From IMG/VR virus record IMGVR_UViG_3300028416_000004, positions 168,515-232,514 of that record: a stretch of 64,000 bases of DNA. One strand, given 5' to 3'. The notes beneath the pieces were generated by a model. It was not told where the DNA came from and did no database searches. It was given only the letters and a program-made list of their open reading frames with translations. This document shows positions 9,555 to 60,547 of this stretch, in pieces; position 1 is the stretch's first letter; each line of letters starts with the position of its first letter. A program made the position numbers and the translations under genes.

Positions 9555-11882
9555 ATGAAAGATAAAATAAAAATATTATTAGGTGAAAAAGATGTTTTTC
9601 CTCAAGTAAATAAAGATGTTTATATAAATTTAGAAATTTATAATTCACCTAATGAAATTAAAAAAGAGTTAGTTAATAATGACTTTAATGTAAGAGAACA
9701 ATTTAACAAAGAAAGAAGAGAATCTTTGAGATTTTGTATATATGGAACCTTAAATTCAATCTTTTCTGATACCAACAATTTATCGATAGAAATAAAAACT
9801 AATCATGAAGATTTGTTGTTTAGCCCAAGAATAGAACCTAATGCTAAATCTTCTGTTACACATAAAGTGTTATCAGCACCTTTATCAAAAAATAATAATT
9901 TATCTAAAAATATATTTAAAAAAAATAAAAGTTGTTTTAATTTTTTGTTTGAAATTAGCCCTGATATAAATAATTATGGAGAAACTAAAGTTTTAGAAGT
10001 TAAAATTATTGATGAGGAAAAAAATATTTTTGCCAATTTTGAGATACCATTTTTATTTTTCGATTCTGAAGGTAATTTTATTGATTTTGGTACAGAAACA
10101 GTTGATATAGATATAGACGGTAATGAACAAGTTGTAGAAAATGATTTTCCTTTTTTTTATGGAACTCATTGGATAAAACAAGAATTTAGTCTATCTAAAC
10201 CCCTCAAAATATCCCTAGTTAAATCTGAATTTGATAATTTAAATAATTTAACTGTAAACGAAAGAACGGGTGAAGTAAAGTTTTATGCTAAATTAGAAAC
10301 GCCTAGTTTATATGGGGTTGAAGAGGCTGAAATTTATATAGAAAGAGATGAGACTTTAAAAGACCCAAATGAAGATTTTGTTTTTGAAAATCAAATTTTA
10401 AAATGGGAAAAAGGAGAACAATTTAAAGAAGTTAATCTACAAGTTTTAGATGATTTATTTACGGAGGAAGATGAAAGAATTATTTTTGGTATTAAAAATC
10501 TAAAATATTCAGAAAAAGATATTAATTCTAATTTTGAATTAATCATAAAAAATGATGATTTACCATCTCCTATAGGGTTTGAAAGTAAGCAATTTGAAAT
10601 TACTTCTGGAGATAAATTGAATATATCATTAGAAGCAGACACTCCAATAAAAGGTATTAATCAAACTATAGATTTAATTTTAGATGATGTTAATAGTACA
10701 ATAATAATAGGAGAGGACATAGAGAATACTGGTACTATTGAAGACCCAGAATTTAGAAAGACCATACTTTTAAAAGAAGGTTTAGATTTATTTGAAATAG
10801 AAATAGATATAAAAGAATATTTTAATTATGGATTAGATAAAAAAGCTATTTTTAAATTAGAAAATCCTACTCAAAATATTAAAGTAAAAGATAATTTAAA
10901 ACAACTTAATTTAACTGTAAAAGATAAATCAGTAAAAAGATATACTACATACAAAATAGATAATGACCCTTTAAGAGGTCAAGGTATATTTAGATTGTCA
11001 TACCCTAGTCCTAAATTAGTGGGGGCTCCAATATCTTTTGCTAATACGAATCTGTATTCTCAATATAATGTAACTAACAACTTTACTTATAAAATTAATA
11101 TTATAAACGAAGGAGAAATTGTTTTATATGATAATAAATTAATTAATCCTGGGGAGGTTGTTACAAGTATAAGTTCAAGTGATGGATTTCAAAACTTTGA
11201 GTTTACATTACCTTCTAATTATTCTTTTGATAAACAAAATGTTTTTTATGAAAAATCAAAATATAAGTTTGTAATAACAGATATAGAAGATTCTTCTAAA
11301 ATACAAGTTATAAAAAATGATTACATAACTTTCGCAGATGTTAATATAGATTCTCAAGCATTAGATTCTTCACTTGATTTTTCTGGTAAAACTTATTATT
11401 TAACTTCAGAAATTTTAAAAATAAAAACTAGATTAGATTTAAATGGTGATTTAAAAAGTGAAAAGGCAATTTATGATATAATCAATAACGCTAAGATTAA
11501 CACAAGTGATAATTTAACTGTAATTAAGCAAAAATTAAGAGATGCAGGTTATTATAAAAAAAATACGTTTACATTTTTGAATAATAAATTTGATGAAAAT
11601 AAAATAACTTCCACAGCAAATAGTATATTGAATTTTATTAGTAAATATCCAACCTTTGAAATACCTAACTTTTTTACTCCTTCAGATGAAATTAGTAGTT
11701 TCTCTATAGATTGCAAAATAAATGGTTTATTAATATTAAGTAAATTATTTAGCAAAACATCAGCAGTTACTAAAGTTAATAATATTAAATTTGAAGAAAA
11801 TCCTATAAAATATACTTATTTTAAAGAAGTAGATGGTAGTAATTATACATTAATGCCAGTAGAACCATTAAATAATTATTAG
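9555..11882 (+). CDS. Virion structural protein with Calx-beta-like domain
   Basis: EDFVFENQILKWEKGEQFKEVNLQVLDDLFTEEDERIIFGIKN matches the Calx-beta pattern. Confidence 0.6.
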   Translation: MKDKIKILLGEKDVFPQVNKDVYINLEIYNSPNEIKKELVNNDFNVREQFNKERRESLRFCIYGTLNSIFSDTNNLSIEIKTNHEDLLFSPRIEPNAKSSVTHKVLSAPLSKNNNLSKNIFKKNKSCFNFLFEISPDINNYGETKVLEVKIIDEEKNIFANFEIPFLFFDSEGNFIDFGTETVDIDIDGNEQVVENDFPFFYGTHWIKQEFSLSKPLKISLVKSEFDNLNNLTVNERTGEVKFYAKLETPSLYGVEEAEIYIERDETLKDPNEDFVFENQILKWEKGEQFKEVNLQVLDDLFTEEDERIIFGIKNLKYSEKDINSNFELIIKNDDLPSPIGFESKQFEITSGDKLNISLEADTPIKGINQTIDLILDDVNSTIIIGEDIENTGTIEDPEFRKTILLKEGLDLFEIEIDIKEYFNYGLDKKAIFKLENPTQNIKVKDNLKQLNLTVKDKSVKRYTTYKIDNDPLRGQGIFRLSYPSPKLVGAPISFANTNLYSQYNVTNNFTYKINIINEGEIVLYDNKLINPGEVVTSISSSDGFQNFEFTLPSNYSFDKQNVFYEKSKYKFVITDIEDSSKIQVIKNDYITFADVNIDSQALDSSLDFSGKTYYLTSEILKIKTRLDLNGDLKSEKAIYDIINNAKINTSDNLTVIKQKLRDAGYYKKNTFTFLNNKFDENKITSTANSILNFISKYPTFEIPNFFTPSDEISSFSIDCKINGLLILSKLFSKTSAVTKVNNIKFEENPIKYTYFKEVDGSNYTLMPVEPLNNY

Positions 11883-14037: not shown

Positions 14038-14673
14038 ATGAAAAAGAAAGTTAAAAAGTTAGAATTAAAAAAATTGATTCAAGAGTATAATTATTTGTTG
14101 ACAGATGAAACTTATAAACAAGAAGTTGTTTCTGAAACTAAATCTGATTTCCTTAAAGAAGTTCATAATAAAAGAGTTGATTTAGGTTTAATAAAAGATG
14201 AACCGTACACTCCAGAAAATGATAACAATAACAATAAAAAGGAAGAAGGAAGTAAAGGTGAAGAAGGGAATGAAGCAGAAGATAATAAACAAAACTCTAA
14301 TAGTGAAGACGAAATAACAAATGATTCAAACAAAAAAGAAAAATCACCTAAAGTTAAAAAAATATACAGAGAAATTGTAAAAAAAACCCACCCAGACAAA
14401 GACAAAACAGAAAAGTATATAGATTTATATAAAGAAGCAACTTCTGCATATGAAAAAAACGATATAGTAGCCCTAATATTTATTTGTTCTAAATTAGATA
14501 TTGAAATTGATTTAGAAGAAGATGATATAGGAAGTATAACTTTAGCAATTAAAGAAAAGAAAAAAGAACTACAAAATATAGAAATGTCTTATTTGTGGTT
14601 ATGGTATAATTCTAAAACACAAGAACAAAGAGATAAAGTGGTAGAATTGTTTATAAGTAAAAATGTCAAATAA
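14038..14673 (+). CDS. J-domain (DnaJ-like co-chaperone) protein
   Basis: KVKKIYREIVKKTHPDK...LYKEATSAYEK is helix II, the HPD loop and helix III of a J-domain. Confidence 0.8.
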   Translation: MKKKVKKLELKKLIQEYNYLLTDETYKQEVVSETKSDFLKEVHNKRVDLGLIKDEPYTPENDNNNNKKEEGSKGEEGNEAEDNKQNSNSEDEITNDSNKKEKSPKVKKIYREIVKKTHPDKDKTEKYIDLYKEATSAYEKNDIVALIFICSKLDIEIDLEEDDIGSITLAIKEKKKELQNIEMSYLWLWYNSKTQEQRDKVVELFISKNVK

Positions 14674-47555: not shown

Positions 47556-50500
47556 ATGAGTAAAGTTACAATTAAAAATTCAATAGCACATTTATCTGAT
47601 ATTCATATTAGATACGGAAGTAGGCATCAAGAATATAGAGAAGTTTTTGAAGAAACTATAAAAGATTTAAAAAAACAAAAGCCTAGAAGGATAGCTTTAA
47701 CTGGAGATTTATTTCATATTAAAATAACTCTTTCTCCAAAAGCTGTACAGTTAGCTGGTTGGTTTTTAAAAGAATTGTCTAAAATAGCACCAGTTGATTT
47801 AATTTTAGGTAATCATGATTTAAATCTACAATCTTTAGACCAAGGTAATGCAATTGAACCAATAATTGATTTAGTTAATGGCGGTTATATTGTAGAAAAA
47901 GATGCAAAAGACTTACCTATACACGTAGGTGAAGGAAATGGTATTTTCTTTTTTTTACATAGTGGTTTTTACAATATTGAAGATGATATTGTTTACGGTA
48001 TTTATTCTTGTCTGGATGATGAAATATTAACTCTAAGTAAGAAGGATAAAAACAAAACTTATATTGCTATGTATCATGGGCCCATTTATGGCTCTAGAGG
48101 AAATAATGGTTATGAGTTACATTCTAATGAATATATGATGAAGTTAAGTAGCTTTAATAACTTCGATATAGTCATGTTAGGAGATATTCATGAACACCAA
48201 GCTTTTTCTTTAAAAGATTCTTCTATTGAAAATGTAGCTTATCCTGGGTCTTTAATACAGCAAGATTATGGTGAAAGTATTGATAAAGGTTATATTATTT
48301 GGAATTTAGAAACTAAAAAGTTTGAAAGAAAATTTATACCTAATAACTATGGATTTTCTAGTTTACACATTTCAAAAGGAGAATTGTTTGAAGAAAGGTT
48401 AGAAGATTTAAAATTATCTAATAATCCTAAAAAAACAAAAGTTTCTATTGTATGGGAGGAATATGAAGAAAATTATTCTGTTGAAAAAGAAAAGCAAATA
48501 GAAAAGTTTATTAAAAACAAATATGGTTGTGAAATTATCAATATTGATTGTAAATATATAAGTAAAGAAGATGAGATTGACGAATTATCTATTGATGATG
48601 ACATTGATTATTCGAATACAGATGAATTTGAAGATTTATTAAAAGAATTTGTTGAAAATAGTGAATATGATAATGAAGAAGAAGTTTTAGAGTTATCAAG
48701 AAAAATAGATGAAGAATTAAATTATTTAATAACTAAAGGTAAAAAATGGTTTTTAGATAGTTTAGAAGTATGGAATTTATTTGGTTTCCCTTCAGAGAAA
48801 ACTACATTTGATTTCAATAAAATGACTAGTGTAACTGGTATTTTCGGTAAAAACTTTAGTGGTAAAACAAACATCATTAGAGCTTTAGTTTGGATTGCTT
48901 ACAGAAAAATATTAGGCGGTGGAGAACCATATAGATTAACTAATATGTACACCAAAGATGATAAAGCTGGTGGTAGAATTTATTTAACTATAGATTCTCA
49001 AAAGTACTATATTGAAAGAACTGTAAAAGTTAAAACTAAAAAAGATGGCACTTATGATGTTTCATATGGGGTTGAATATAAAGTTTTAAAAACTGATGAG
49101 GAAGGTAAAGAGAAGTGGGTTTCTATAGATTCCGAAAAAGCTGCAACAGAAAAAAAAGAAAGAAATAATATTATAATTGATTCTATAGGTACATTTGATG
49201 ACTTCACTAAAATTGTTTTACAAGCTCAAGGGGGTGAGGGTAACTTTTTAGATATGAGTCAACAACCTAAAAATGATTTAATCAACAAATATTTAGGGCT
49301 TGAAATTTTTAGGGATAGGTACGAATTTGCTAAAAAGACTTTTAACGACATAAAAGCAAAGCAGAAATTTTTAGGAAGCTCTAAAGAACATCAAGAATCT
49401 ATAGAAAAAGAAAAAGAATCAATTAAAAGTAACAAAACTTCACTAAAACAATATCAAGATGAAAAGTTAGATACTGAAAAATTAGTTGAAAATCAAGAAG
49501 GTGAAATATTAGAGTTAACAAAAACTTTAATAAAAGTAGAAGAAACAAAATATAAAGATGTAGATTCAGCAAATAAAATTATAGAAAAAACAAAAGAAAA
49601 AATAGATAACAATAATAGTTCTCAAAAGGATTTGACAGATTGGTTGTCTATTAATTATAAGAAAGAAATCCCTCAAGATAATGTTCTTACGGTTAGTGAA
49701 ATTGAAAGAAAATTAAAAGAAGAAAGGTCATTTTTTGAAACAGAAAAAAAAGAATATAATTCTATAATGAGTTGGGTTGAAGAGAATCCTAAACAAAAAG
49801 AGATAGATGTAAAACCTTTAAATTCTAAAATATTAGAAATAGAATCTGCCTTGTCTAAATTAAGAGATAAGTTAGAAATATCTAAAGGTAAAAAATGTCC
49901 TACTTGTGGAAATGTAGAACAAAAAGCTGATTTAGAATTAGAAAAAAAATGCACTTCAGATATTGAAAGAGGGGAAATCTCTTTAAAAAACAAGAATATT
50001 GAATTAAAAAATGCTGAAGATATAGTTTCTCACAATATAACTTTTGATAAAAAACAAAATAAATTAGGTTCAATAAAAAACTCACTAAAAGAAAGGAAAA
50101 TAAAAATTGATAACCTTAAAGAATCTTTGGAAACTTCTATGAAAATAGATGATATAAAGAAGCATAATAATTTAGTTGAATCGAAAAGTAAGGAATTAGA
50201 AAATTTAAAAAATGAAAACTTATCATTAAATAAAGAATTAGAAAGTGTAGAAAAAGATATTTCCATTTTAGAGACAAATAAAAATTCAATTGAAAGTAAT
50301 AAAGATATAAATTTAAAAATAAAACTTTATGAAGATGAAAAGAAGTCTTTAAAATTAATAATTAATCAATTGAACGATAAATTAACTTCTATTAAATCAG
50401 AAATTAGAATATCAGAAAATAATATAGAAAATTTAGAAGAAAAGTTAGAAGTTATCAAAAAAGCTGAATCTTCATTTAGTAAATACGCTATATATTTACA

Positions 50501-51056
50501 AGCAGTACATAGAGATGGTATACCTGCTAGAATTATTAAGAAAAAACTTCCTGTTATAAATTATAAAATAAATTCTATTTTGAAAAATTTAGTAGATTTT
50601 AAAGTAGAATTAACTATAAAGAGTAATGGAGACATTAAAGAATTTTTCTATTTCAACTCTTTGGAAAGAGATGGTCTTCCAATGTCTATGGCTTCTGGTG
50701 CACAAAAGTTTATTGGTAGTGTTGCTATAAGGGATTCATTGCATTTTGTAAGTTCTTTAACTAAACCATCTTTATGTATTATTGATGAAGGTTTTGGTTC
50801 TTTAGATGATGATTTAACTATTGCTATGCAATCTGTTTTTTATTACTTAAAAGATAAATATAAAAACATATGGATTATTACTCACAAAAATGAAATTAAA
50901 GATTTCGTTGATAATATAATACAAGTTTCAAAGGATAGAAGAATGTTAACTGATGAACAAATGAAAGATAATCCGAAAGCTGGTATTTCAGTTTTTGATT
51001 TAAGTCATTCAAGTAATAAAGGTGAAGTTAATAAAGTAAAAGAATTAGTCCATTAA
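47556..51056 (+). CDS. Mre11-Rad50 (SbcD-SbcC; T4 gp47-gp46-like) nuclease-ATPase fusion
   Basis: Phosphoesterase motifs HLSDIH, GDLFH, GNHD and LGDIH; Walker A GKNFSGKT; zinc hook CPTC; signature MASGAQ; Walker B IIDEGFGSLD; H-loop ITH; all in one 1166-aa frame. Confidence 0.92.
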   Translation: MSKVTIKNSIAHLSDIHIRYGSRHQEYREVFEETIKDLKKQKPRRIALTGDLFHIKITLSPKAVQLAGWFLKELSKIAPVDLILGNHDLNLQSLDQGNAIEPIIDLVNGGYIVEKDAKDLPIHVGEGNGIFFFLHSGFYNIEDDIVYGIYSCLDDEILTLSKKDKNKTYIAMYHGPIYGSRGNNGYELHSNEYMMKLSSFNNFDIVMLGDIHEHQAFSLKDSSIENVAYPGSLIQQDYGESIDKGYIIWNLETKKFERKFIPNNYGFSSLHISKGELFEERLEDLKLSNNPKKTKVSIVWEEYEENYSVEKEKQIEKFIKNKYGCEIINIDCKYISKEDEIDELSIDDDIDYSNTDEFEDLLKEFVENSEYDNEEEVLELSRKIDEELNYLITKGKKWFLDSLEVWNLFGFPSEKTTFDFNKMTSVTGIFGKNFSGKTNIIRALVWIAYRKILGGGEPYRLTNMYTKDDKAGGRIYLTIDSQKYYIERTVKVKTKKDGTYDVSYGVEYKVLKTDEEGKEKWVSIDSEKAATEKKERNNIIIDSIGTFDDFTKIVLQAQGGEGNFLDMSQQPKNDLINKYLGLEIFRDRYEFAKKTFNDIKAKQKFLGSSKEHQESIEKEKESIKSNKTSLKQYQDEKLDTEKLVENQEGEILELTKTLIKVEETKYKDVDSANKIIEKTKEKIDNNNSSQKDLTDWLSINYKKEIPQDNVLTVSEIERKLKEERSFFETEKKEYNSIMSWVEENPKQKEIDVKPLNSKILEIESALSKLRDKLEISKGKKCPTCGNVEQKADLELEKKCTSDIERGEISLKNKNIELKNAEDIVSHNITFDKKQNKLGSIKNSLKERKIKIDNLKESLETSMKIDDIKKHNNLVESKSKELENLKNENLSLNKELESVEKDISILETNKNSIESNKDINLKIKLYEDEKKSLKLIINQLNDKLTSIKSEIRISENNIENLEEKLEVIKKAESSFSKYAIYLQAVHRDGIPARIIKKKLPVINYKINSILKNLVDFKVELTIKSNGDIKEFFYFNSLERDGLPMSMASGAQKFIGSVAIRDSLHFVSSLTKPSLCIIDEGFGSLDDDLTIAMQSVFYYLKDKYKNIWIITHKNEIKDFVDNIIQVSKDRRMLTDEQMKDNPKAGISVFDLSHSSNKGEVNKVKELVH

Positions 51057-53563
51057 TCGTTTGTTTCTGGATTATCATAAGGTTGTTCTAAGTCTCTAGC
51101 ACCAGATTCTCTAAATCTTCTGACTTTAGATTTAAAATCACCTTCTTCTTTTTGTTTTTGAATTAATTCATCTTGGTATTTTTTTGCTTTTGACAAGTCA
51201 AAATTTACTTCTACTGTATTCATTCCTTTATCATTAGGGTTGTATTTATCTGGATTAAAATTGAAGAAATTTCCAGTAAACCACATTCCTCTAATGTTAT
51301 CAGCTTTAAAAAGTCGCCAAACATTCTTAGCTTCTGCGCTACGAATGTTGGTGCTTTTAGCTTCAGATTCTGATTGACCTATTGTGTGTACAGCTCTTAT
51401 GACACGATTACCAGCTCTTGAAATTCCCATAGCTACAGGATAAATCAATCTATATTTACCTGAAGGAGCTTTCATTTCATCACCTTTGTATAAAATTCCA
51501 ACTTCTCTACCTTGTGTTATTGCTTGAGTCATTAAATCTAAATTAAATGGAACTCTTGTGTTACTAGCTGAAAAAGGGTTAGAAGATTCTGTTAAAATTT
51601 TTTCATTATTAGAAAGTACACTTTGTAATTCTCCCCTTATTAATTTTCTAATTTCTGATAATTGATTTTTTTTAATATCTTCAATTTCTCTTAATTCTAT
51701 TACGTTAGGGTTGTATATTATAATATGTTTAGAGTTTTCTCTATTTACAATGACTCCATCAATTCCCAATTTAACACAATTTCTTACAAATTCAACACTA
51801 TCATACCTATAAGCTTCAATCCATATTTGAAGTAACACATCTTTTTCATTGTCATTATATTCATAAGCTGAATCAACCATCATTTCAATTCCAGTTTCAA
51901 TATTTGGAGACCAGTTACTAGTAGTTATTTCTAGTCTTGGTGACATTTTAACTAATTGAATTAATAAATCTCTATTAATATCTTTTTCCTCAGATTCATC
52001 AAATAAAATTTTTGGTGAAACCCTAACTTCATAAACATAACCTCCATCAGCATAACCTAAAGCTTCTTCGTATGAAGTTGTAAAATAAACCCCAGGACCT
52101 TCTTGGTCTGTTGCTTCTTCTGCACCAACAAATTCATCTGTAAATTTTTTAATTTTATGTGGAGAACCATGATAAACAATAAAACTTTCGTTTTCAGTAA
52201 CCTCTTTCATTAAATCATTTTCATTTATAGATTTATCATCAATATCAAATGCTTTAATTTTCCCTTCACTATCAACCCCTAAATTATCAGGTTTTATATC
52301 GCTTGCTTCAATGCCTAAATATCTATATGCTCTATTTATGTCATCAATATCATCAATAAATTTAATCATTTCTTCATCTAAATCTAATTCAGAAGTATCC
52401 AAATTATCTAAATATTGAATAGGTAAACCTTGTTCGCTTAATAAGTCTTCAAGTTGGTAAAACATATCTTCTATACTATAATCCTCCTCCAGTCTTTCCA
52501 TTATAATATAACACTTACCATCTATTACATCCGCAAAATAAAAATCAACAAATCCTTTTAGGGCTGGTATGTTTTTGTTAACTAATTTTTTTGCTAACTC
52601 AAACTCGCTTTTAGATGATGTTATTTTTAAAACTCTACTTTCATCTATTATATAAGCATTTCCAAAGTCACCAGAACCAACAAAAGATAAATCATCTGGG
52701 TTTATGTTTTGCTCTTTATAAAAACTTTCTAAATTAGATTCTTTTAAAGTGCTTTCATTTGTATAACTAGTATCAACCTTAGTATAATAACCTTTATATT
52801 TTTCTATATCTTCTTTAACTAAATTTACACATACCTTTTCTTCACCAGCAGCTATTGCAGACATAATTCTATGGTGACCATCTCTAAGTTGAACTGTAAA
52901 TGAACCTAAATCTCCATCTTGATTTTCGATAGCTTTTTTAATTTTGGTTTCAATATCTATAAATTCATTAAATGTATTATAATCTTCCTCCTCTTTAAAA
53001 TCTTCACCATCAGAATCTCTTTCTAAATCATAAAACTCTTTTTTTAATTGTTCTAAAGATTTAATATTTTCTATTAAGCTAAATTTGTTTTCAATAAAAA
53101 AATCATCTACTTCAGTTAAACTTGTGTAATTTTCATCTGGGATATATGTTTCATTCCCTATATATTCATCTAAGTCACTATCCCCTACACTATAAGGCTC
53201 TTTAACACCATCATAATCTACCTCAAATCTATTATTAAAACTAGCTATTTGATGTTCTTTTATTTCTTGAAAGTTTACTACATTCCCATAAGCATAAGAA
53301 CATTCTATTTCTACATTTTCTTCACTGTTCTTAATTAAGTTAGTTAAAAAATCCATTTTATCAGAATCATATATATTCCCCCACATTCCTTCAACTTGAT
53401 TTTTATTTACAACAATCATTTGATAAGAATCTCCATACCAAGTAACTTGTCTTCCTATGTATTCCGCAGAATTTTCTTTTATATCATCTGAAAGTTTATT
53501 TGAAAAATATTCTTCTTCAAATAAAACACTAAAAGTCTCTCTAATTATATTTCTTATATTCAT
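51053..53563 (-). CDS. Polyvalent multidomain protein: ParB-like, protein-kinase-like, ADP-ribosyltransferase-like and WYL-like domains
   Basis: DGHHR (aa 228-232); GSGDFG/VLK/DIKPDN/FD (aa ~294-441); VYHGSP...GPGVYFT..YEEALGYA...DGVIV (aa ~463 onward); C-terminal R.IYP...IRAV...WRLFKADNI. Confidence 0.75.
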   Translation of the reverse strand: MNIRNIIRETFSVLFEEEYFSNKLSDDIKENSAEYIGRQVTWYGDSYQMIVVNKNQVEGMWGNIYDSDKMDFLTNLIKNSEENVEIECSYAYGNVVNFQEIKEHQIASFNNRFEVDYDGVKEPYSVGDSDLDEYIGNETYIPDENYTSLTEVDDFFIENKFSLIENIKSLEQLKKEFYDLERDSDGEDFKEEEDYNTFNEFIDIETKIKKAIENQDGDLGSFTVQLRDGHHRIMSAIAAGEEKVCVNLVKEDIEKYKGYYTKVDTSYTNESTLKESNLESFYKEQNINPDDLSFVGSGDFGNAYIIDESRVLKITSSKSEFELAKKLVNKNIPALKGFVDFYFADVIDGKCYIIMERLEEDYSIEDMFYQLEDLLSEQGLPIQYLDNLDTSELDLDEEMIKFIDDIDDINRAYRYLGIEASDIKPDNLGVDSEGKIKAFDIDDKSINENDLMKEVTENESFIVYHGSPHKIKKFTDEFVGAEEATDQEGPGVYFTTSYEEALGYADGGYVYEVRVSPKILFDESEEKDINRDLLIQLVKMSPRLEITTSNWSPNIETGIEMMVDSAYEYNDNEKDVLLQIWIEAYRYDSVEFVRNCVKLGIDGVIVNRENSKHIIIYNPNVIELREIEDIKKNQLSEIRKLIRGELQSVLSNNEKILTESSNPFSASNTRVPFNLDLMTQAITQGREVGILYKGDEMKAPSGKYRLIYPVAMGISRAGNRVIRAVHTIGQSESEAKSTNIRSAEAKNVWRLFKADNIRGMWFTGNFFNFNPDKYNPNDKGMNTVEVNFDLSKAKKYQDELIQKQKEEGDFKSKVRRFRESGARDLEQPYDNPETND

Positions 53564-53578
53564 AATAATTAAATAGGT

Positions 53579-54730
53579 TTACTTCTTTTTTTTCTTTTTA
53601 TTTAGTGATTCTTGAGCTTTTTTCCACAAACTCTCATCAGATTGTCTAGCTTTTCCTTTACCTGTTATAAAGCTATTAACTCTTCCCATAGCCCATTGGT
53701 TTTGAGAAACTCCAGACCTATGACCAGTTCTCCAAGCAGCCATACCTTTATCATGAACTTGTTTTAAAATATAATATGGTATACCTGTTTTTTCTGATTT
53801 GTTTTCTAAAGCTTTTTTTGTGTTACTTGAAACACTCTTAGATTCATCAATTTTATTATGACTACTAGGCATTATTGAAATTCCGTATTTTTTATTTAAT
53901 ATTTTTTCTAAAGTTATAGGTATTAACATAGATATTGAACCCATAGCCATAATTGCAACTATTTTTGCTATATCTTTTGCTTGTTCTTTTAGAAATTTTA
54001 TTTCCTTTTCAGAAACTTCTTGTTTTGATAATATTTTTTTACAAATTTTAAAAGCTTCTTTAGTTTCATCTTTTTCTCTTAATGCTATTTCTTTAAATTT
54101 GTTAAAAGATTGTTTTAGTCTTTCTTTTATTTTATCTTTTTTATCATTTAAAATTTCAACATTTTCACCATACATTTTATGGTATGCTTTAGTTGATGAA
54201 CTTGTTTTGGTTTTTTCTCCTTTATCTGCCTCCCATTGTTTTGTATATGCTTTTGGGTTTGAATGATGTTTTTTTGCAAACTTGTCAATTTCTTTTTTCA
54301 TTTGAGCTCTTTTTTTAGAAGATTTAGAAGTTAGATATTTACCTGGTACTTTTATTCCCTTTTTTGTTCTGGAATCTTTTCCTCTTTCTTCTAAAGAAAT
54401 CTGTAAACTATCAGATATGATTTCTTTTAAATTATCAACTTTATTTAAGTTCAATTTATAAATTTTAATTTCTAAATTCCCATCACCCTTAATTAGTCTA
54501 TGAAATTGTTCTGACTCAATTAATATAGGTTCATTAATATTTAAATTCTTAGGAAGTTCATCATCTAATTGTATTTTCCAATCACTTTCATGTAAAGGTA
54601 TTATTATTCTATCTTCAGCATCTCTATGCCAAACTAATTCTTCATTTTTTAATTCTTTTGAGAATGTTCTAATTACAAACTTTCCATCTTTTTGTTCTTT
54701 AAAAGGAAATTTATTTTCTTCTGAATTCAT
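53579..54730 (-). CDS. Multidomain protein: N-terminal cupin-like domain, C-terminal DUF5824-like domain
   Basis: LVWHRD.EDR...WKIQLDDELP...FHRLIKG (cupin-like); TKTSSSTK and GMAAWRTGHRSG..Q.QWAMGRVNSF (DUF5824-like as recalled). Confidence 0.6.
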   Translation of the reverse strand: MNSEENKFPFKEQKDGKFVIRTFSKELKNEELVWHRDAEDRIIIPLHESDWKIQLDDELPKNLNINEPILIESEQFHRLIKGDGNLEIKIYKLNLNKVDNLKEIISDSLQISLEERGKDSRTKKGIKVPGKYLTSKSSKKRAQMKKEIDKFAKKHHSNPKAYTKQWEADKGEKTKTSSSTKAYHKMYGENVEILNDKKDKIKERLKQSFNKFKEIALREKDETKEAFKICKKILSKQEVSEKEIKFLKEQAKDIAKIVAIMAMGSISMLIPITLEKILNKKYGISIMPSSHNKIDESKSVSSNTKKALENKSEKTGIPYYILKQVHDKGMAAWRTGHRSGVSQNQWAMGRVNSFITGKGKARQSDESLWKKAQESLNKKKKKK

Positions 54731-54749
54731 AATTTTTTTTAATTATTTT

Positions 54750-55370
54750 TTACCACCATTTTCCACTTCCACTTAAACCTAACATTTTTGCATATCTAGG
54801 CAATCTACAAGACCAATATCCTGGTGTAGTTTTGTCATTTTTTTGTTCACAATTATGTCTATCAGCAAATCTTTTTCTTGCTTCTGGGTCTCGAAGTTTT
54901 ACTGCTAGTTTGCCTCCACCTTCTTTTGCACCAAATGAAACTTTTTGAATCTTTTTAGTTTTAGGATTTCTAACATAAACATAAAATTTTTTTGAACCAC
55001 CTCTTTTTGGTTTGTTTAACTTTATGTTTTTATTATTTTTTTTACCCTCTTCTAAATTTTCTTCATATTCTTCAAATGGTAAATCTAACACCACTTTTTC
55101 CCCCTCAAATATGCCAAAGTAACCTGCGTCACTTTTTATTAACTCTTCATCTTTTTCGCACAATAAAACTGAATTAGAATTATAAAGTTCTCTGACTTCA
55201 TTTATTAATTTCAAATGTTTGTTAGATGCGTATCTATAAATTGAATTCGATATGCCTAATTTGTTTTCTAGGTGATAATTTAAACTTTCACTTATAACAT
55301 TTTTAGACTCTTTAAGAATTATATTTTCCTTAAATTCAACCTCTAATATTTCTGAAATAAACTTTTTCAT
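54750..55370 (-). CDS. Phage-type hypothetical protein with basic Cys/His C-terminal domain
   Basis: KKFYVYV.NPKT..I.KVSFG...RKRFADRHNC...KTTPGYWSC. Confidence 0.65.
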   Translation of the reverse strand: MKKFISEILEVEFKENIILKESKNVISESLNYHLENKLGISNSIYRYASNKHLKLINEVRELYNSNSVLLCEKDEELIKSDAGYFGIFEGEKVVLDLPFEEYEENLEEGKKNNKNIKLNKPKRGGSKKFYVYVRNPKTKKIQKVSFGAKEGGGKLAVKLRDPEARKRFADRHNCEQKNDKTTPGYWSCRLPRYAKMLGLSGSGKWW

Positions 55371-55420
55371 TTATGCTTTTAATAACTATTAAATAAATAG
55401 TTATAAATTTATAAACATAG

Positions 55421-56032
55421 TTAAAATGAATTGTTTTTTAGGTTTGGAAAATTTTTCCAATTATAATCTCTTTTTGATTTATTGAATTTTTTACTTAAAT
55501 ACTTAACTTCACTTTTATTTAAGTCATTTTCATCTGCAGTTTCATCTGCTTTGTCGGAAAAAGTTTTTTGAGTTTTAACATCATAGTTTGAATCAAACCA
55601 AAATCTATCTTCTTCTGGGTTATATTCTTTTTTAAAATCTTCAGAATTAAAAATTTGATTAAAAATATCCATATATATATTAGATACTGAATAATTATCT
55701 GTAGATTTAGGGCCTACATTTTCTTTTACTGATTTTTTGTTTTTTTTTGATGCACAATGAGCTTTTTGGCTAAACCCTTTAGGGTTATTACAATTTATTG
55801 AATTTTTATATTTTTGACTCCAAGCTTCATCAAGACTTCCATACTTGTCAATCATCCATTTTTTTAACTCTTCAATATTAAACTTTTTATTTTCAGAATC
55901 ATACCCACAAGTATGGCAAAGGTATGGATTTTTATCTTCTTTCTCTTTTTCCCAACTATGAAAACAATTATCACAAACAATCATCCCAGAAAGTTCTTTT
56001 AATCTTTTTTTATATTCTTCATTTAAAATCAT
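55421..56032 (-). CDS. Hypothetical protein with Zn-ribbon and WSQKYK..INCNNPKGFSQKAHC module
   Basis: CDNC...CHTC ribbon; second Cys/His module; N-terminal RLKELSG motif. Confidence 0.65.
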   Translation of the reverse strand: MILNEEYKKRLKELSGMIVCDNCFHSWEKEKEDKNPYLCHTCGYDSENKKFNIEELKKWMIDKYGSLDEAWSQKYKNSINCNNPKGFSQKAHCASKKNKKSVKENVGPKSTDNYSVSNIYMDIFNQIFNSEDFKKEYNPEEDRFWFDSNYDVKTQKTFSDKADETADENDLNKSEVKYLSKKFNKSKRDYNWKNFPNLKNNSF

Positions 56033-56035
56033 AGC

Positions 56036-56401
56036 TTATTTTTTTGTAATTTTAATAAAGTCATCTACAATTTCAACTTTAAAGTCAGAAGGAGAAATGT
56101 TTTCAAAATAAATCTTATAAAATTCTAATGGATTTTTGTTATAATCTAAACTTTTTACTTCTTTTGTTTTATTTTTTTTAGAATCTTTATCTTCCCATGT
56201 TATCAAATTCTTTTTTGTGGAATTTTTATAGAATTCTACTTCATCTATAAATTGCCATTTCTTATCTCCTTTTTTCCTTTTATAAAAAACATCACCACCA
56301 ATGTTACGAACTTGATAATCATAGTTGTTAAGGTTATCATTTTCTAACATTATCCCAGATAAAAATTTAATTCTATTTGTATATGATTCAGATAATTTCA
56401 T
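56036..56401 (-). CDS. Hypothetical protein (RIKFLSG motif)
   Basis: 121-aa ORF with the upstream late-type motif at 56423-56430. Confidence 0.6.
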   Translation of the reverse strand: MKLSESYTNRIKFLSGIMLENDNLNNYDYQVRNIGGDVFYKRKKGDKKWQFIDEVEFYKNSTKKNLITWEDKDSKKNKTKEVKSLDYNKNPLEFYKIYFENISPSDFKVEIVDDFIKITKK

Positions 56402-56476
56402 ACTATTTAATCTAAAGTTTATTATAAATATTAATAAACTTTACTTTTGTGATTGTTTTATTAAATTGTTTTCATA

Positions 56477-56767
56477 ATGCACACTAGGAGACAAATAATT
56501 AAGAATCAAAAAGACTTTTTATATGAAATTAAAAAATCTTTAAATAAAGAATTTAATAATTCAAAACAAGAATTGTTAAATATAGAAACAGATGATAAGG
56601 AAATAATAGATGCTAAAAATATTTTAGAATCTAAATTTAAAAATGTCAAAATCGAAAAAGAAATAAATAAGTTTTTTATAAATGAAAATAACATTTATCC
56701 CAAATATTATGTTTGGTGGGATGAGATTAATGAAAAAGTAGAAATATTTTTATATGAAATCAAATAG
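56477..56767 (+). CDS. Hypothetical protein
   Basis: 96-aa ORF with a TACTTTTG -7-like element at 56442-56449. Confidence 0.55.
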   Translation: MHTRRQIIKNQKDFLYEIKKSLNKEFNNSKQELLNIETDDKEIIDAKNILESKFKNVKIEKEINKFFINENNIYPKYYVWWDEINEKVEIFLYEIK

Positions 56768-57092
56768 AAAGAATACAGAAAATGTTTTAATAGACCTATC
56801 ATATATGGGTTCTATGAATCAATTTGAAGAATTTTATGGTTTTTCAGTTACATACCAAGAATTAGAACAACAAAGTTATGTTGAATTTAAAGATATAATG
56901 TTTGAAAATATTAATCCTAAAATAAAATTTAGAAAATATGGAAGATTTGGTAACATATTGACTGTTAGAGCTGAAATGTATCAAGAAGAAATACAAAAAT
57001 TTGAAGAATTAATACAAAATAATAAGATTAAAACTATTTATGACTGGATAGTGAAAGATGTTACAATTTTAAAAGAAGAAGATTATGAGTGA
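56754..57092 (+). CDS. Hypothetical protein
   Basis: 112-aa ORF overlapping both neighbours by a few bases. Confidence 0.6.
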   Translation: MKSNRKNTENVLIDLSYMGSMNQFEEFYGFSVTYQELEQQSYVEFKDIMFENINPKIKFRKYGRFGNILTVRAEMYQEEIQKFEELIQNNKIKTIYDWIVKDVTILKEEDYE

Positions 57093-57789
57093 AAAAGGAG
57101 ATGCTAAAAAAGAAATGATGGATAGGTTTACTTCAATGGGCATACCTAAACCAGTAAAGCCGATTTCAAACCCCACTGTTACGCCTAAAAATACAGAAAT
57201 GGCCTCTAAAATGGAACAGATTAGGAATGGAGGTTTAAAAAATAACTTTAAACAGTTTATAGATAAATCTGAAAAAGTTTCACATTCACCATCGGCTATA
57301 CCAGTTCCTAAAGTTGGAAAAAATCCAAATGAAAAAGCTAAAAATGTACCTAATTTAAAAAGTTACTCTTCATCTTCAAGTTCTGAAGCTTCTATGTTAG
57401 AGAATATGATGTATGGAGATAGTAATGTAGCTGTAAGTACACAAAATGGTGAAATAGGTAATTATGGTCCTACAAGTACAAACACTAGACAATTGTTACA
57501 ACAGAGATTGTCAGAGAAGAAAAGTCAAGTAAATGAAAATAGCTATCAATCTGAAGAATTTTTACATTACAATTCTGATAGTAATATAACTGATGCAGAG
57601 TTAACTGAAAAAATTACAGAAATTGCTAAAAAAGTCTCAAGAGAAATGATTAAAAAAGTCATTTTGGAATTATCTGATTCTAAAGGTGGATTAGTTATTG
57701 AAAGTAAAAATGTTAAAAAAGCAGAAGTTATCGCAAAAAATAAAGTTAAAATAGACGGTAAAGTTTATAAATTAAGTTTAGATAAGTAA
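57085..57789 (+). CDS. Hypothetical protein
   Basis: 234-aa ORF. Confidence 0.65.
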   Translation: MSEKGDAKKEMMDRFTSMGIPKPVKPISNPTVTPKNTEMASKMEQIRNGGLKNNFKQFIDKSEKVSHSPSAIPVPKVGKNPNEKAKNVPNLKSYSSSSSSEASMLENMMYGDSNVAVSTQNGEIGNYGPTSTNTRQLLQQRLSEKKSQVNENSYQSEEFLHYNSDSNITDAELTEKITEIAKKVSREMIKKVILELSDSKGGLVIESKNVKKAEVIAKNKVKIDGKVYKLSLDK

Positions 57790-58211
57790 TGATGAAAACT
57801 AATTATGATATAAATTCTGAATTAATAAAAAATAAATTTTTTATTTCTGTTGAATTAAAATATAAAGATAGCTTTTTTGATGATAAATATAATTTAAAAG
57901 GATTTGTAAGTGAAAATAAAATAACCTTTTCTGTATACAAAAATAAAAAACAAATGGAAAAGGCATCTTTTGTTTTAGAAGAGAGTTTAGATAACAATAC
58001 TTTTTTGAAAGAGTTAAGTGATAGTATAAAAGATTATGATTTAATGGAAGATTTCAAAAAGAATCATTTCAATGATTTTTCTAAAGAATTATCCGAATAT
58101 ATTAAGAAAGATAATTCATCTATTATTTTGAATAACAAGCTAGTAGAAGGTTATAAAACAAAAATGCAATCAGTAGCTGGAATAAGGGGTGTCAATCAAA
58201 GTTTAAGATAA
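57789..58211 (+). CDS. Hypothetical protein (C-terminal KMQSVAGI motif)
   Basis: 140-aa ORF coupled to the previous stop (TAATG). Confidence 0.6.
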   Translation: MMKTNYDINSELIKNKFFISVELKYKDSFFDDKYNLKGFVSENKITFSVYKNKKQMEKASFVLEESLDNNTFLKELSDSIKDYDLMEDFKKNHFNDFSKELSEYIKKDNSSIILNNKLVEGYKTKMQSVAGIRGVNQSLR

Positions 58212-58212
58212 T

Positions 58213-59163
58213 ATGTTGATAAAAAAAGGTGACAAAGGAAAAAAAGTAAAAGAAATACAAAAGGCATTAGGTTTAAAAGATGATGGTATTTTCGGTTCAA
58301 ATACCGAAAGAGCTGTTAAAAAATTTCAAAAAGAAAATAGCCTTAAAGATGATGGTATTGTAGGTAAAAAAACATATCAAAAACTCCTAAAGTTAGATAC
58401 AGACAGACAAGGTTTTGATGATTCTAATGATACAGATAATAAATTAAATTATTTAGGCTCTTATGAAACGAGTTTAGGGTTAAAAATAGATAAGGCATAT
58501 TTGGACTCTGATGAATATGTTAAAGATTATGGTAAAATAGAACCAGAAAGTTTCTTTATACATCATACAGCTGGGTGGAATAACCCTTATAGTACAATTA
58601 ATAGTTGGAATATAGATGCTAGAGGGAGGATTGCTACACAATTTTGTATAGGTGGAACTAGCATAAAAAATGGAGATGATACATATAACGGAAAAGTTGT
58701 AGAGTGTTTTCCAAATAACTATATAGGTTGGCATTTAGGTAAAGTTGGAAATTTTAGTGTTTCTAAAAAATCAGCAGGAGTTGAAATTAATAATTTTGGA
58801 TACGTAACAAAGAAAGGTAATAAATTTTATAATTATGTAAATATTGAAGTACCTGAAGAAATGGTTTGTGATTTAGGTTATAAATTTAGAGGTCATCAAT
58901 ATTGGCATGCTTACACTAAAGAACAGATAGATTCTTTAAGGTTGTTAATAAATCATGTTTCAGAAATATACCCTAAAATAGATGTTAAATCAGGTTTAAC
59001 TAAATTATTAAAAGATGGTGTAGAACCTAAAGAAGCATTTGATTTTAATGAAGAAGCTTATAATGGTAGGATAAAAGGTTTATGGTCTCATACAAATGTG
59101 AGAAAAGATAAATTTGATATGTACCCTTGCCCTATGTTAGTTGAAATGTTGAGAAACTTATAA
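58213..59163 (+). CDS. Endolysin: peptidoglycan-binding domain plus N-acetylmuramoyl-L-alanine amidase (Amidase_2)
   Basis: IKKGDKG..VKEIQKALG...DGIFG..TERAVKKFQ...DGIVG..T (PG_binding_1); FIHHTAG, GVEINN and SHTNVRKDKFD zinc-amidase motifs. Confidence 0.9.
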   Translation: MLIKKGDKGKKVKEIQKALGLKDDGIFGSNTERAVKKFQKENSLKDDGIVGKKTYQKLLKLDTDRQGFDDSNDTDNKLNYLGSYETSLGLKIDKAYLDSDEYVKDYGKIEPESFFIHHTAGWNNPYSTINSWNIDARGRIATQFCIGGTSIKNGDDTYNGKVVECFPNNYIGWHLGKVGNFSVSKKSAGVEINNFGYVTKKGNKFYNYVNIEVPEEMVCDLGYKFRGHQYWHAYTKEQIDSLRLLINHVSEIYPKIDVKSGLTKLLKDGVEPKEAFDFNEEAYNGRIKGLWSHTNVRKDKFDMYPCPMLVEMLRNL

Positions 59164-59196
59164 TCAATAGTTAATTTTTAATTCATATTTATTAAT

Positions 59197-59406
59197 ATGG
59201 AAAATATATATGTTATATCAGAATCTAACAATAAACCTTTATCTAAAACTGAGATTAAAAAAATTATACAATCTGAATTAGAAAAGGCTTTTAAAAAGTC
59301 TAACATTTTAAATAAAGAAGATGTTAGAAAAATTGTTAAAGATATGATGATTAAGCAGTATAAGTTTTTCTGGGAAAAGAAAAGTTTTTGGGCAAATAGC
59401 ATTTAG
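59197..59406 (+). CDS. Small hypothetical protein
   Basis: 69 aa with TATTTAT at 59186-59192. Confidence 0.6.
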   Translation: MENIYVISESNNKPLSKTEIKKIIQSELEKAFKKSNILNKEDVRKIVKDMMIKQYKFFWEKKSFWANSI

Positions 59407-59407
59407 T

Positions 59408-59620
59408 ATGAATAAAAAAGAATTAAAAGATTTAATAGATTTAGAAGTTTCTAAAGTTTTTGCTGATATGGTTTATAAAGAACCTAAAGAAGAACCTAAA
59501 GAAGAACCTAAAGAGGAAAATAGTAACAACAATATGATTCAAACTAAAAAAGTAGGTTTAACTGAAGAAGAGTTAGATGAAATATTGTTTTACGGAGGAA
59601 AAAAAGAAAAAGAAGATTAA
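59408..59620 (+). CDS. Small acidic hypothetical protein with KEEP repeat
   Basis: 70 aa; 12-bp repeat AAGAACCTAAAG x3 at ~59478-59513. Confidence 0.55.
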   Translation: MNKKELKDLIDLEVSKVFADMVYKEPKEEPKEEPKEENSNNNMIQTKKVGLTEEELDEILFYGGKKEKED

Positions 59621-59621
59621 G

Positions 59622-60122
59622 ATGGCAACAAACATTACAACAGCAGAAGTGAAAGAATTGCAAAAACAATTTATTGAAAAAATTGGAGATTATGCAGTTA
59701 AATTTGATGATATTTCTCTTTATAAAGGATATAGTGGACAAGATGCAGTTTTTTCTGGTAAAATATTATTAGAGAAAGATTATAGTATATCTTGGTCTTT
59801 TTCTCTTGTGGATGGAATAAAAATATTAGAAGCTAATTTTGTTATTAACGATAAAAATAGAAATATATTACAAAATCTACAAGATATTTATCAAATATTT
59901 TATGAAAAATTTAATCAATTAATAAGAGATATTGAGATAGATTCAGATGTGGAAGGTTTAAGTGATGAAAGGATTAATATGACACAATCTTCAGAGGAGG
60001 AAAGTTCTCAAGAAGAAGAGGAAGAAAATATGTCAATAACAGAATCTAGATTAGTAAAAAATAGAGCTAAGTTAATTAATTCTAGTTATGAAAGAATGAA
60101 AAAATTATCAGGAATTAAATAA
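59622..60122 (+). CDS. Hypothetical protein (C-terminal RMKKLSGI motif)
   Basis: Start moved from 59577 to Met 59622 (MATNIT) to avoid overlapping the upstream gene. Confidence 0.65.
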   Translation: MATNITTAEVKELQKQFIEKIGDYAVKFDDISLYKGYSGQDAVFSGKILLEKDYSISWSFSLVDGIKILEANFVINDKNRNILQNLQDIYQIFYEKFNQLIRDIEIDSDVEGLSDERINMTQSSEEESSQEEEEENMSITESRLVKNRAKLINSSYERMKKLSGIK

Positions 60123-60142
60123 AAAAACAAAAATTATAAAAC

Positions 60143-60178
60143 AAAAAAAAACGCTCACTTAAATGGGCGTTTTTTTTT
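60143..60178. terminator. Bidirectional intrinsic terminator
   Basis: A-run, ACGCTCA-N6-TGGGCGT, T-run between convergent genes. Confidence 0.8.
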
Positions 60179-60193
60179 GTTTTATATAGATAA

Positions 60194-60547
60194 TTAGTTT
60201 TTAATTATCTTCCAACTTTCTAGAGGGTTAGTTTCATATTTTAAAGGTGTCTCTCTATAAATTATAAATTTAAAACTCCTTCCAGGATTAAGAGTATCAT
60301 TACCTTGAATTTTTATGTAATCTCCATCTTTTAACTTTTCGCTTTCAGCAGCGTCAACTATTTTAAATAAATCATCTAATTGTCTTTCCATTTTAATAGT
60401 CACACCTTCAAAATTTAAAATGACAGTTTCACCTGGCTTACTATCAAAAATACTTTCTGAAGAAGTAGGATTTTCTTTTACATGAGAAGTCATTTCTTCG
60501 TATGATTCTCTTATTAATTGTCTTATTAGTTCTTTAGTAATTTTCAT
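60194..60547 (-). CDS. Hypothetical protein (ELIRQLIRES motif)
   Basis: 117 aa with the late-type motif at 60577-60584. Confidence 0.6.
   Translation of the reverse strand: MKITKELIRQLIRESYEEMTSHVKENPTSSESIFDSKPGETVILNFEGVTIKMERQLDDLFKIVDAAESEKLKDGDYIKIQGNDTLNPGRSFKFIIYRETPLKYETNPLESWKIIKN

Follow-up and report, generated by a model that had tools for sequence, protein, structure and literature searches.

The capsid targeting sequence (CTS) of the phage T4 internal proteins IPI–III and Alt, reportedly described by Mullaney and Black in 1996, reads M-K-T-Y-Q-E-F-I-A-E. The scaffolding proteins of P22, phi29 and 80alpha carry a C-terminal coat-binding helix, and the SaPI protein CpmB mimics such a scaffold helix. 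Encapsulin cargo-loading peptides, which are short, C- or N-terminal, modular and transferable, suffice to load diverse enzymes into an HK97-fold shell. In T4, unrelated internal proteins enter the core by means of the CTS, which is then cleaved (PMC3012670; PMC9958956; PMC5694885). The T4 protease gp21, which cleaves after Glu, strips N-terminal peptides from internal proteins, Alt, gp23 and gp24 (PMC9958956; PMC5694885), and the sorting of proteins into the T4-type scaffolding core ‘remains mysterious’ (PMC9958956). The ejection proteins of phages phiKZ, 201phi2-1 and SPN3US have long cleaved propeptides of 80–130 amino acids (aa) that are lineage-specific (PMC5694885), and phage polyvalent proteins are expected to be packaged, like T4 Alt, and predicted to travel with the DNA (PMC5512222). 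Here we describe two short peptide tags carried by unrelated proteins encoded in a 64,000-nucleotide (nt) stretch of DNA (the window), which forms the last 64 kb of the 232,514-bp virus record IMGVR_UViG_3300028416_000004. Coordinates marked ‘genome’ refer to the whole record and, unless a relative is named, all others to the window.

The first tag (motif 1) is defined as R-x-K-x-L-[SA]-G-I and the second (motif 2) as [IL][RK]x[LI]IxE, the latter with a fuller form M-K-I-x-K-x-E-L-x-x-I-I-x-E-E. The initial annotation had read them as a modular zip-code by which diverse cargo would enter the prohead, and this proposal is supported, all of the sequence-level tests that were run being in agreement with it. 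We put at roughly 0.7 the probability that they are cargo-loading tags of a T4-type prohead, acting by scaffold mimicry in analogy to the T4 CTS. The evidence consists of a T4-type head module, motif 1 on the putative scaffold and on the protease tail, motif 2 on head-module proteins, the presence of the tags on diverged orthologues, tag swaps, co-variation between clades, flanking protease-type sites and an ART-PolyVal cargo.

All of the tag strings quoted in the initial annotation are found at the genes that it named, and no similarity between the tag-bearing proteins was found outside the tags. Among the 250 open reading frames (ORFs) counted genome-wide motif 1 has 7 matches, every one of which (7/7) lies within 15 residues of a terminus. 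Whole-protein shuffles give an expectation of 0.40 matches, 0.04 of them terminal, and shuffles of the terminal 30 aa an expectation of 0.08. The exact regular expression (regex) for motif 2 finds 10 matches in the same ORFs, 8 of them N-terminal, against 1.9 and 0.27 in shuffles. A slightly relaxed regex matches 11 proteins at the N-terminus; with only the N-terminal 30 aa shuffled the expectation is 0.56 (maximum 5 in 1000), and N-terminal amino-acid bias is therefore no explanation for motif 2. The zip-code idea had been made to depend on the motifs being more frequent than in composition-matched shuffles, and both lie far above them. Three copies of motif 1 are found outside the window, in or beside the head module, and one of these is the C-terminus of the scaffold. 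Another of the three is on a 189-aa acidic protein (g150915), which combines an N-terminal motif 2 with a C-terminal motif 1. Motif 2 is likewise N-terminal on small proteins encoded between portal and protease (the gp67/68 position), both here and in several relatives. A literature search with tag strings (e.g. ‘QELAGI’) found nothing relevant.

The T4-type prohead genes are present approximately 25 kb upstream of the window. They encode a gp23-type major capsid protein (genome 140633–142192; Gp23, PF07068, 3e-75), a gp21-type prohead protease (genome 143731–144375; Peptidase_S77, PF03420, 2e-33) and, between these two in the gp22 position, an acidic 478-aa protein (genome 142222–143658). A protein in the same place is seen in approximately 80 relatives, with an Asp + Glu content of 0.22–0.31 and conserved N- and C-termini. 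Its position, acidity and variable length with conserved ends identify the 478-aa protein as a putative gp22-like prohead scaffold. It has no Pfam or PHROG family, and the C-terminus of T4 gp22 is unlike motif 1. All of the relatives examined share a conserved C-terminal motif of the scaffold, which reads Y-E-S-x-E..R-M-K-x-L-A-G-I in the close clade (capsid protein 67–82% identical) and Y-E-N-P-Q-F-K-R-M-K-D-L-M-S-K in the distant clade (capsid protein 43–49% identical). The motif is likewise found at the end of the proteins in scaffold position in Flavobacterium phage immuto, Microcystis phage Mel-JY01 and the huge phage LR756508. A related motif is found in the C-terminal tail of the protease, in the variant that matches the clade (..R-M-K-K-L-M-G.. 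distant, ..K-L-x-K-L-A-G/S.. close). When a profile is built only from the scaffold C-termini of nine relatives, three tagged cargo proteins rank 2nd–4th of the 250 ORFs; in that profile the order is the phage's own scaffold, g150915 and then, third, the 181-aa protein encoded at 59577–60122. Motif 1 thus copies the conserved motif at the scaffold's own C-terminus.

The immuto protein of this group (immuto35A_203; MW353176.1, L154:4707–5948) is mis-annotated in GenBank as a ‘DNA polymerase phi-like protein’. By its position, acidity (Asp + Glu 0.23) and C-terminal motif it is predicted to be the head scaffolding protein.

The initial annotation had further remarked that the tags lie next to L-x-E motifs, and [LIVMF]-x-E does indeed adjoin most tags, well above background. 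The N-terminal motif 1 tags are followed by such a site within 6 aa in 13 of 21 cases (background 0.098, p = 8e-9), typically as ..A-G-I-L-x-E, and it precedes 7 of the 11 C-terminal tags (p = 0.005). Motif 2 itself terminates in I-I-x-E. T4 gp22 starts M-L-K-E-Q-L-I-A-E and T4 gp67 M-E-G-L-I-E, and T4 gp23 is cut after F-L-T-E65. The last of these has a parallel in the capsid proteins of this group, where alignment A1 has an invariant E60 within M/L-L/I-N-E (M-L-N-E60 here). At the level of sequence, most tags are bounded by a site of prohead-protease type, at which cleavage is predicted.

By capsid protein at least 599 relatives are present in IMG/VR. The nearest in GenBank, at 29–46% identity over the aligned part, are immuto, Mel-JY01, two ‘huge phage’ assemblies and Rhodothermus phage RM378; when the region itself was compared with GenBank phages by megablast, the only match was a spurious one of 41 bp. 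Three whole related genomes of 222, 372 and 519 kb were compared. Motif 1 has 10, 4 and 7 matches in them, on different proteins, of which 9, 3 and 7 are terminal (19/21), and motif 2 is N-terminal in 14, 14 and 7 cases against approximately 2 expected. A DNA pattern for Y-K-x-R-L-x-E-L-A-G-I, run on all of IMG/VR free of any ORF or positional constraint, gave 5 matches. All four of those inspected begin at ORF residue 5–7, right after the Met, the fifth, in a contig of the related genome G002, lying outside the inspection. In orthologue pairs with bodies 30–37% identical the tag is retained at the same end, and its conservation extends to phages with just 34% identity in the capsid protein. 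The tags behave as portable modules under selection. The motif 1 tag profile has no match in T4, S-PM2, Syn9 or HTVC008M; in immuto there are two significant matches (E 1e-5 and 8e-5), both of which start M-K-K-Q-I-L-S-E-Q-F-x-R-M-Q-x-L-A-G-I-I-T-E. Tagged immuto genes are immuto35A_42 and immuto35A_187.

Two variants of motif 1 can be told apart, an A-type (..R-x-K-x-L-A/S-G) and a B-type (E..R-I-K-x-M-M). Four genomes with an A-scaffold contain 6, 10, 2 and 6 terminal A-type tags and 0, 0, 1 and 0 of the B-type, and a 251-kb genome with a B-scaffold contains 0 and 2, respectively. The flanks of the capsid gene give A5/B0 in the close clade (234 ORFs) and A0/B15 in the distant clade (1171 ORFs). 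The tag variant thus seems to track the scaffold variant between clades, an observation that is supportive rather than decisive. Counted in the distant-clade flanks are five tandem ORFs of 163–282 aa just downstream of the capsid gene of IMGVR_UViG_3300010354_000434 (L025:12458–15921, minus strand). All five end in the B-type ..L-N-E-I-R-R-I-K-E-I-M-K, and they look like an expanding cassette of tagged cargo.

One cargo candidate of the cluster is an 836-aa protein (51053–53563, minus strand) with motif 2 at its N-terminus (53537–53563). Residues 461–621 (51701–52183) form an ART-PolyVal domain (Pfam PF18760, 36.5 bits against a cut-off of 31.2; phrog_25279, 2e-28). A ParB-like D-G-H-H-R and a kinase-like G-x-G-x-x-G ... 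D-I-K-P-D-N are also seen in the sequence, and comparison with solved structures gave kinase matches only, which were non-significant (E 0.2–0.7). With several unrelated effector domains, including one that is typical of the class, the protein is assigned as a polyvalent protein. It ends in a further module (residues 659–814; 51122–51589, minus strand), approximately 160 aa long and with no Pfam or PHROG family, which together with the ART-PolyVal domain would be the cargo. A low-confidence model of this module (pLDDT 58) weakly resembles, at E ~0.01, the WYL/Sm domains of the defence regulators CapW, PafBC, DriD and BrxR. That a packaged WYL-like protein might act as a decoy for host defence signalling is speculation. 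The module has a conserved core of ~160 aa (R-V-P-F-N ... G-Q-S-E ... W-R-L-F), with homologues at L137:2938–3615, L091:16434–17144 and L110:10296–11066.

The module is 52% identical (E 2e-48) to a free-standing protein of L145 that carries an N-terminal motif 1 tag, and homologues are also present in G001, G003, G002 and L147. In five phages the module, there approximately 200 aa, is free-standing with motif 1 at the N-terminus, whereas here it is fused as residues 659–814. The linker in front of it contains a motif-2-like segment, I-R-K-L-I-R-G-E (residues 638–645; 51629–51652, minus strand), which in alignment A3 occupies the exact position of the N-terminal motif 1 in the five free-standing homologues. 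In the 519-kb relative G001 the WYL-like, ART and kinase-like modules, all three of which are fused here in the 836-aa protein, each have an ORF of their own. Two of these ORFs are tagged, the WYL-like one and the kinase-like one, the latter having an N-terminal motif 2 and adjoining the protease gene. The ART ORF of G001 (247 aa, 42.6% identical, homologous to residues 462–654 of the 836-aa protein) is untagged; 7 nt separate it from an upstream 983-aa ORF that has motif 1 at its N-terminus (G001 178592–182293, minus strand; L153). The pair may be a polyvalent gene that was split or, alternatively, the two-gene form of such a gene. Tags are also swapped within the AAA_33 P-loop kinase family, one member of which has an N-terminal motif 1 (L144), another an N-terminal motif 2 (G001_165649), and a third a C-terminal motif-1-like string followed by motif 2 (G002_308384). 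The Pfam domain excludes the tags in both members scanned.

The other tagged genes of the window encode smaller proteins. Motif 1 is N-terminal on a 121-aa ORFan (56036–56401, minus strand; tag 56342–56401, residues 3–17, then I-M-L-E at 17–20; profile score 23.6 bits) and on a 203-aa protein with a Cys-rich body (55421–56032, minus strand; tag 55982–56032; 24.3 bits), in which no hydrophobic-x-E was found directly after the tag. The 121-aa protein belongs to no Pfam or PHROG family, and a word-indexed search of a large protein collection with its residues 1–40 is uninformative on the spread of the tag because only near-identical orthologues were returned. Motif 1 is C-terminal on a 140-aa protein (57789–58211, plus strand; tag 58140–58184, residues 118–132, after L-V-E), whose orthologue G001_408432 has retained a C-terminal tag at 29.5% identity in the body. 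The same is true of the 181-aa protein (plus strand; alternative start 59622; tag 60087–60119), of which the orthologue G001_410209 is 33% identical. Motif 2 is N-terminal on a 117-aa protein (60194–60547, minus strand; tag 60503–60547; 15.7 bits), with orthologues in G001 (70% identical) and G003 (52%) that both have a motif-2-like N-terminus. Elsewhere in the window it is N-terminal on a 211-aa protein (14038–14673, plus strand; tag 14059–14085) that has a DnaJ match below the Pfam cut-off.

Three further assignments are tentative. A 383-aa protein (53579–54730, minus strand) is a fusion, its residues 9–114 and 114–369 matching two different G003 proteins, and has DUF5824 at its C-terminus (3e-17). 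At the junction of its modules lies L-K-E-I-I-S-D-S, a weak internal motif-2-like segment (residues 101–108; 54407–54430), tentative because it is below the profile threshold. The weak motif-2-like segment of a 69-aa ORF (59197–59406, plus strand; residues 19–27, 59251–59277) is also below the threshold and is not N-terminal, and a 70-aa ORF (59408–59620, plus strand) that was absent from the initial annotation has a weak motif-2-like N-terminus (residues 5–13; 59420–59446). Pfam and PHROG scans of approximately 35 tagged proteins found only AAA_33, ART-PolyVal, DUF5824 and a weak PcfJ match. ORFans make up most of the tagged set, and the recognisable cargo consists of AAA_33 kinases, ParB-like D-G-H-H-R proteins, a kinase-like region, ART-PolyVal and the WYL-like module.

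The cluster in the window is syntenic with 402.9–412.0 kb of G001. The record as a whole has 27% G+C and is that of a tailed phage, with an endolysin (PG_binding_1 + Amidase_2) encoded at 58213–59163 and four tRNAs besides the T4-type head module. The window is found near-verbatim in seawater metagenomes of 16 studies and also in contigs of some RNA runs. In several seawater metatranscriptome runs there are contigs with 71–78% of the words sampled from 55421–58211; for this reason the tagged-gene cluster is probably transcribed in situ, although DNA carry-over is possible. Abutting the region, a 1166-aa ORF (47556–51056, plus strand) looks, from sequence motifs alone, like a fusion of a Mre11-like phosphoesterase with a Rad50/SbcC-like ATPase, which would unite the functions of T4 gp47 and gp46 in a single polypeptide. 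The gene that directly follows the major capsid gene on its downstream side encodes a 491-aa homing/HNH-type endonuclease (genome 139028–140503, minus strand; L001:11028–12503; phrog_3339, 7e-77), an arrangement that can be likened to that of T4, in which segD is located after gene 23.

Several of the tagged genes had also been said to carry a late-type TATTTAT motif. The box itself holds up, but it is not specific to tagged genes: this promoter-like element, a T-rich stretch followed by (A/C)TATTTAT(A/T), shows a 6.5-fold enrichment in sense orientation 15–70 nt before start codons and precedes 82 of the 250 genes, those for the scaffold and the protease among them. Examples in the window lie upstream of 54750–55370, 56036–56401, 57085, 60194–60547 and 60623. 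The box is unlike the T4 late box TATAAATA, which was not found upstream of the tagged genes. As a shared feature the T4 late promoter was rejected, with 137 copies genome-wide against approximately 146 expected from base composition by our own estimate.

Since one of the tags copies the tail end of the scaffold, the most likely role of the tags is to bring the proteins that bear them into the capsid, from which they would be injected with the DNA. The head would be built around the acidic gp22-like scaffold, the last ~20 residues of which (L-Y-E-x..R-M-K-x-L-A-G-I) would be a conserved docking helix. Diverse non-structural proteins would bear a copy of this helix of approximately 15 residues at the N- or C-terminus (motif 1), and others a second, amphipathic N-terminal helix common to the small core proteins of the head module (motif 2). 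Through their tags these proteins would co-assemble with the scaffolding core inside the growing shell. Once the shell was complete the gp21-type serine protease would cut after the Glu of hydrophobic-x-Glu, on the cargo side of most tags, and mature cargo would thereby be freed in the head and injected with the DNA. Binding to the capsid protein or the core, cleavage, packaging and injection are all steps that we infer. Whether a whole lineage of ‘far-T4’ phages, marine and freshwater and of 160–520 kb, uses such a portable two-tag address system by scaffold-helix mimicry we regard as an even call.

A number of points weigh against prohead loading. Motif 2 is not found on the scaffold itself, and its link to the head therefore rests on its head-module neighbours, on the co-tagged 189-aa protein and on its interchange with motif 1. 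Approximately 7% of the ORFs would be cargo, which is above what is known for T4. The adjacent hydrophobic-x-E is missing in 8 of the 21 N-terminal and 4 of the 11 C-terminal tags. Some exact-regex matches of motif 2 on large proteins may be chance, for instance on the 775-aa protein at 9555–11882, and the internal tag copies are, with the remark on a late promoter, the weakest parts of the proposal. One whole distant-clade genome has only 2 cargo-type tags, and the regexes for the A- and B-types were written after seeing the data, which is why the co-variation is not decisive. A complex prediction for the capsid protein (alignment A1) with residues 1–40 of the 121-aa protein scored 0.01 and weighs neither way.

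Of the other explanations, the one that survives best, although it is unlikely, is that the tags dock a different common partner rather than the prohead. This could be a chaperone or co-chaperone, a membrane or replication compartment, or a tail or baseplate assembly factor, which the scaffold and protease would use for their own folding or delivery. In favour of this view, the protein at 14038–14673 joins motif 2 to its weak DnaJ-like match, and the tagged genes are spread over the genome instead of being confined to the head module. Yet the tagged proteins of known role are prohead components only (the scaffold, the protease tail and the core proteins of the head module), prohead-protease-type sites flank the tags, and the types of cargo match known packaged effectors (PMC5512222). 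Less probable still is a role for the tags purely as recognition or degron elements for the gp21-type protease, serving timed activation or destruction and not packaging. Such a role would account for the hydrophobic-x-E adjoining most tags, for the I-I-x-E at the end of motif 2 and for the similar L-I-x-E with which T4 core proteins start. A T4-type protease is active only inside the completed prohead, however (PMC9958956), so that any substrate must already be inside. Furthermore, one third of the tags have no site, and conservation in the 10 residues that precede the site greatly exceeds what three residues would need. Common descent of paralogous terminal domains, or the composition bias of a genome of 27% G+C in which Lys, Ile, Asn and Glu abound and many N-termini begin M-K, is a very improbable source of the shared strings, given shuffles of the terminal 30 aa that yield 0.08 and 0.56 against 7 and 11 observed, the lack of any likeness beyond the tag, and a tag that occurs at both N- and C-termini, is swapped within one family and is kept to phages with a 34%-identical capsid protein.

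If the lineage-wide two-tag system is real, 5–9% of the proteome would be packaged and injected, and new effectors could be recruited by gaining a 15-residue tag at either end, making this a natural phage counterpart of encapsulin cargo-loading peptides. The comparative data point to a testable sorting mechanism for the T4-type core, namely that cargo mimics the C-terminal helix of the scaffold and is then released at a protease site beside the tag. As the tag is present in a phage in culture, Flavobacterium phage immuto, the idea is open to bench tests. The tags would also serve as a sequence-only predictor of the injected proteome for hundreds of uncultured jumbo phages, and the predicted set, being mostly ORFans, would hold prime candidates for counter-defence and host takeover. 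In evolutionary terms polyvalent proteins would be assembled from, and split into, separately addressed modules. Such short tags might additionally be used as tools for loading foreign proteins into phage heads.

Set beside the scaffolds of P22, phi29 and 80alpha and the CpmB protein, the present system is alike in having a conserved short C-terminal helix on a variable, acidic, helical scaffold that is copied by other proteins, there to enter the procapsid. It is unlike them in that the helix is copied onto enzymes and ORFans as cargo and not onto a rival scaffold, and also occurs N-terminally; the C-terminus of a T4-type scaffold is a putative shell binder. Encapsulin peptides are similarly short, terminal, modular and transferable. 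They are unrelated in sequence and operate with no scaffold, protease or DNA, whereas here the cargo of a tailed phage would be proteolytically released and injected, and the analogy is functional only. PhiKZ, 201phi2-1 and SPN3US are, like the marine phage described here, jumbo phages, with many internal head proteins cut after Glu, and the conserved N-termini of paralogues have been proposed as CTS-like. No gp22-like scaffold is known from them, whereas the tags described here are approximately 15 aa long and tied to a recognisable one. The 836-aa protein resembles polyvalent proteins in joining a ParB-like motif, a kinase-like region, ART-PolyVal and a further module. Packaging of polyvalent proteins in phages has been linked mostly to MuF or portal fusions (PMC5512222), in contrast to which a short tag would here provide the address, with the modules separately tagged in relatives.

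The T4 CTS is the closest parallel, being likewise a terminal peptide of 10–20 aa on unrelated proteins of a phage with a gp23/gp21/gp22-type head, ending at a hydrophobic-x-Glu and carried by diverse host-directed cargo that includes an ADP-ribosyltransferase. There is no sequence match between them, motif 2 being like the N-termini of T4 core proteins in form only. As the motif 1 profile has no match in T4, the tags are best regarded as an analogue and not a homologue of the CTS. Motif 1 copies the scaffold C-terminus, whereas the other core proteins of T4 are said to lack the CTS (PMC9958956). T4 has a single CTS and far fewer candidate cargoes than the approximately 15–25 per genome seen here, where the two tags are interchangeable and motif 1 can stand at either terminus. 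Two tags, placement at either terminus, scaffold mimicry, many cargoes and a lineage-wide spread are the properties that are new with respect to the T4 CTS.

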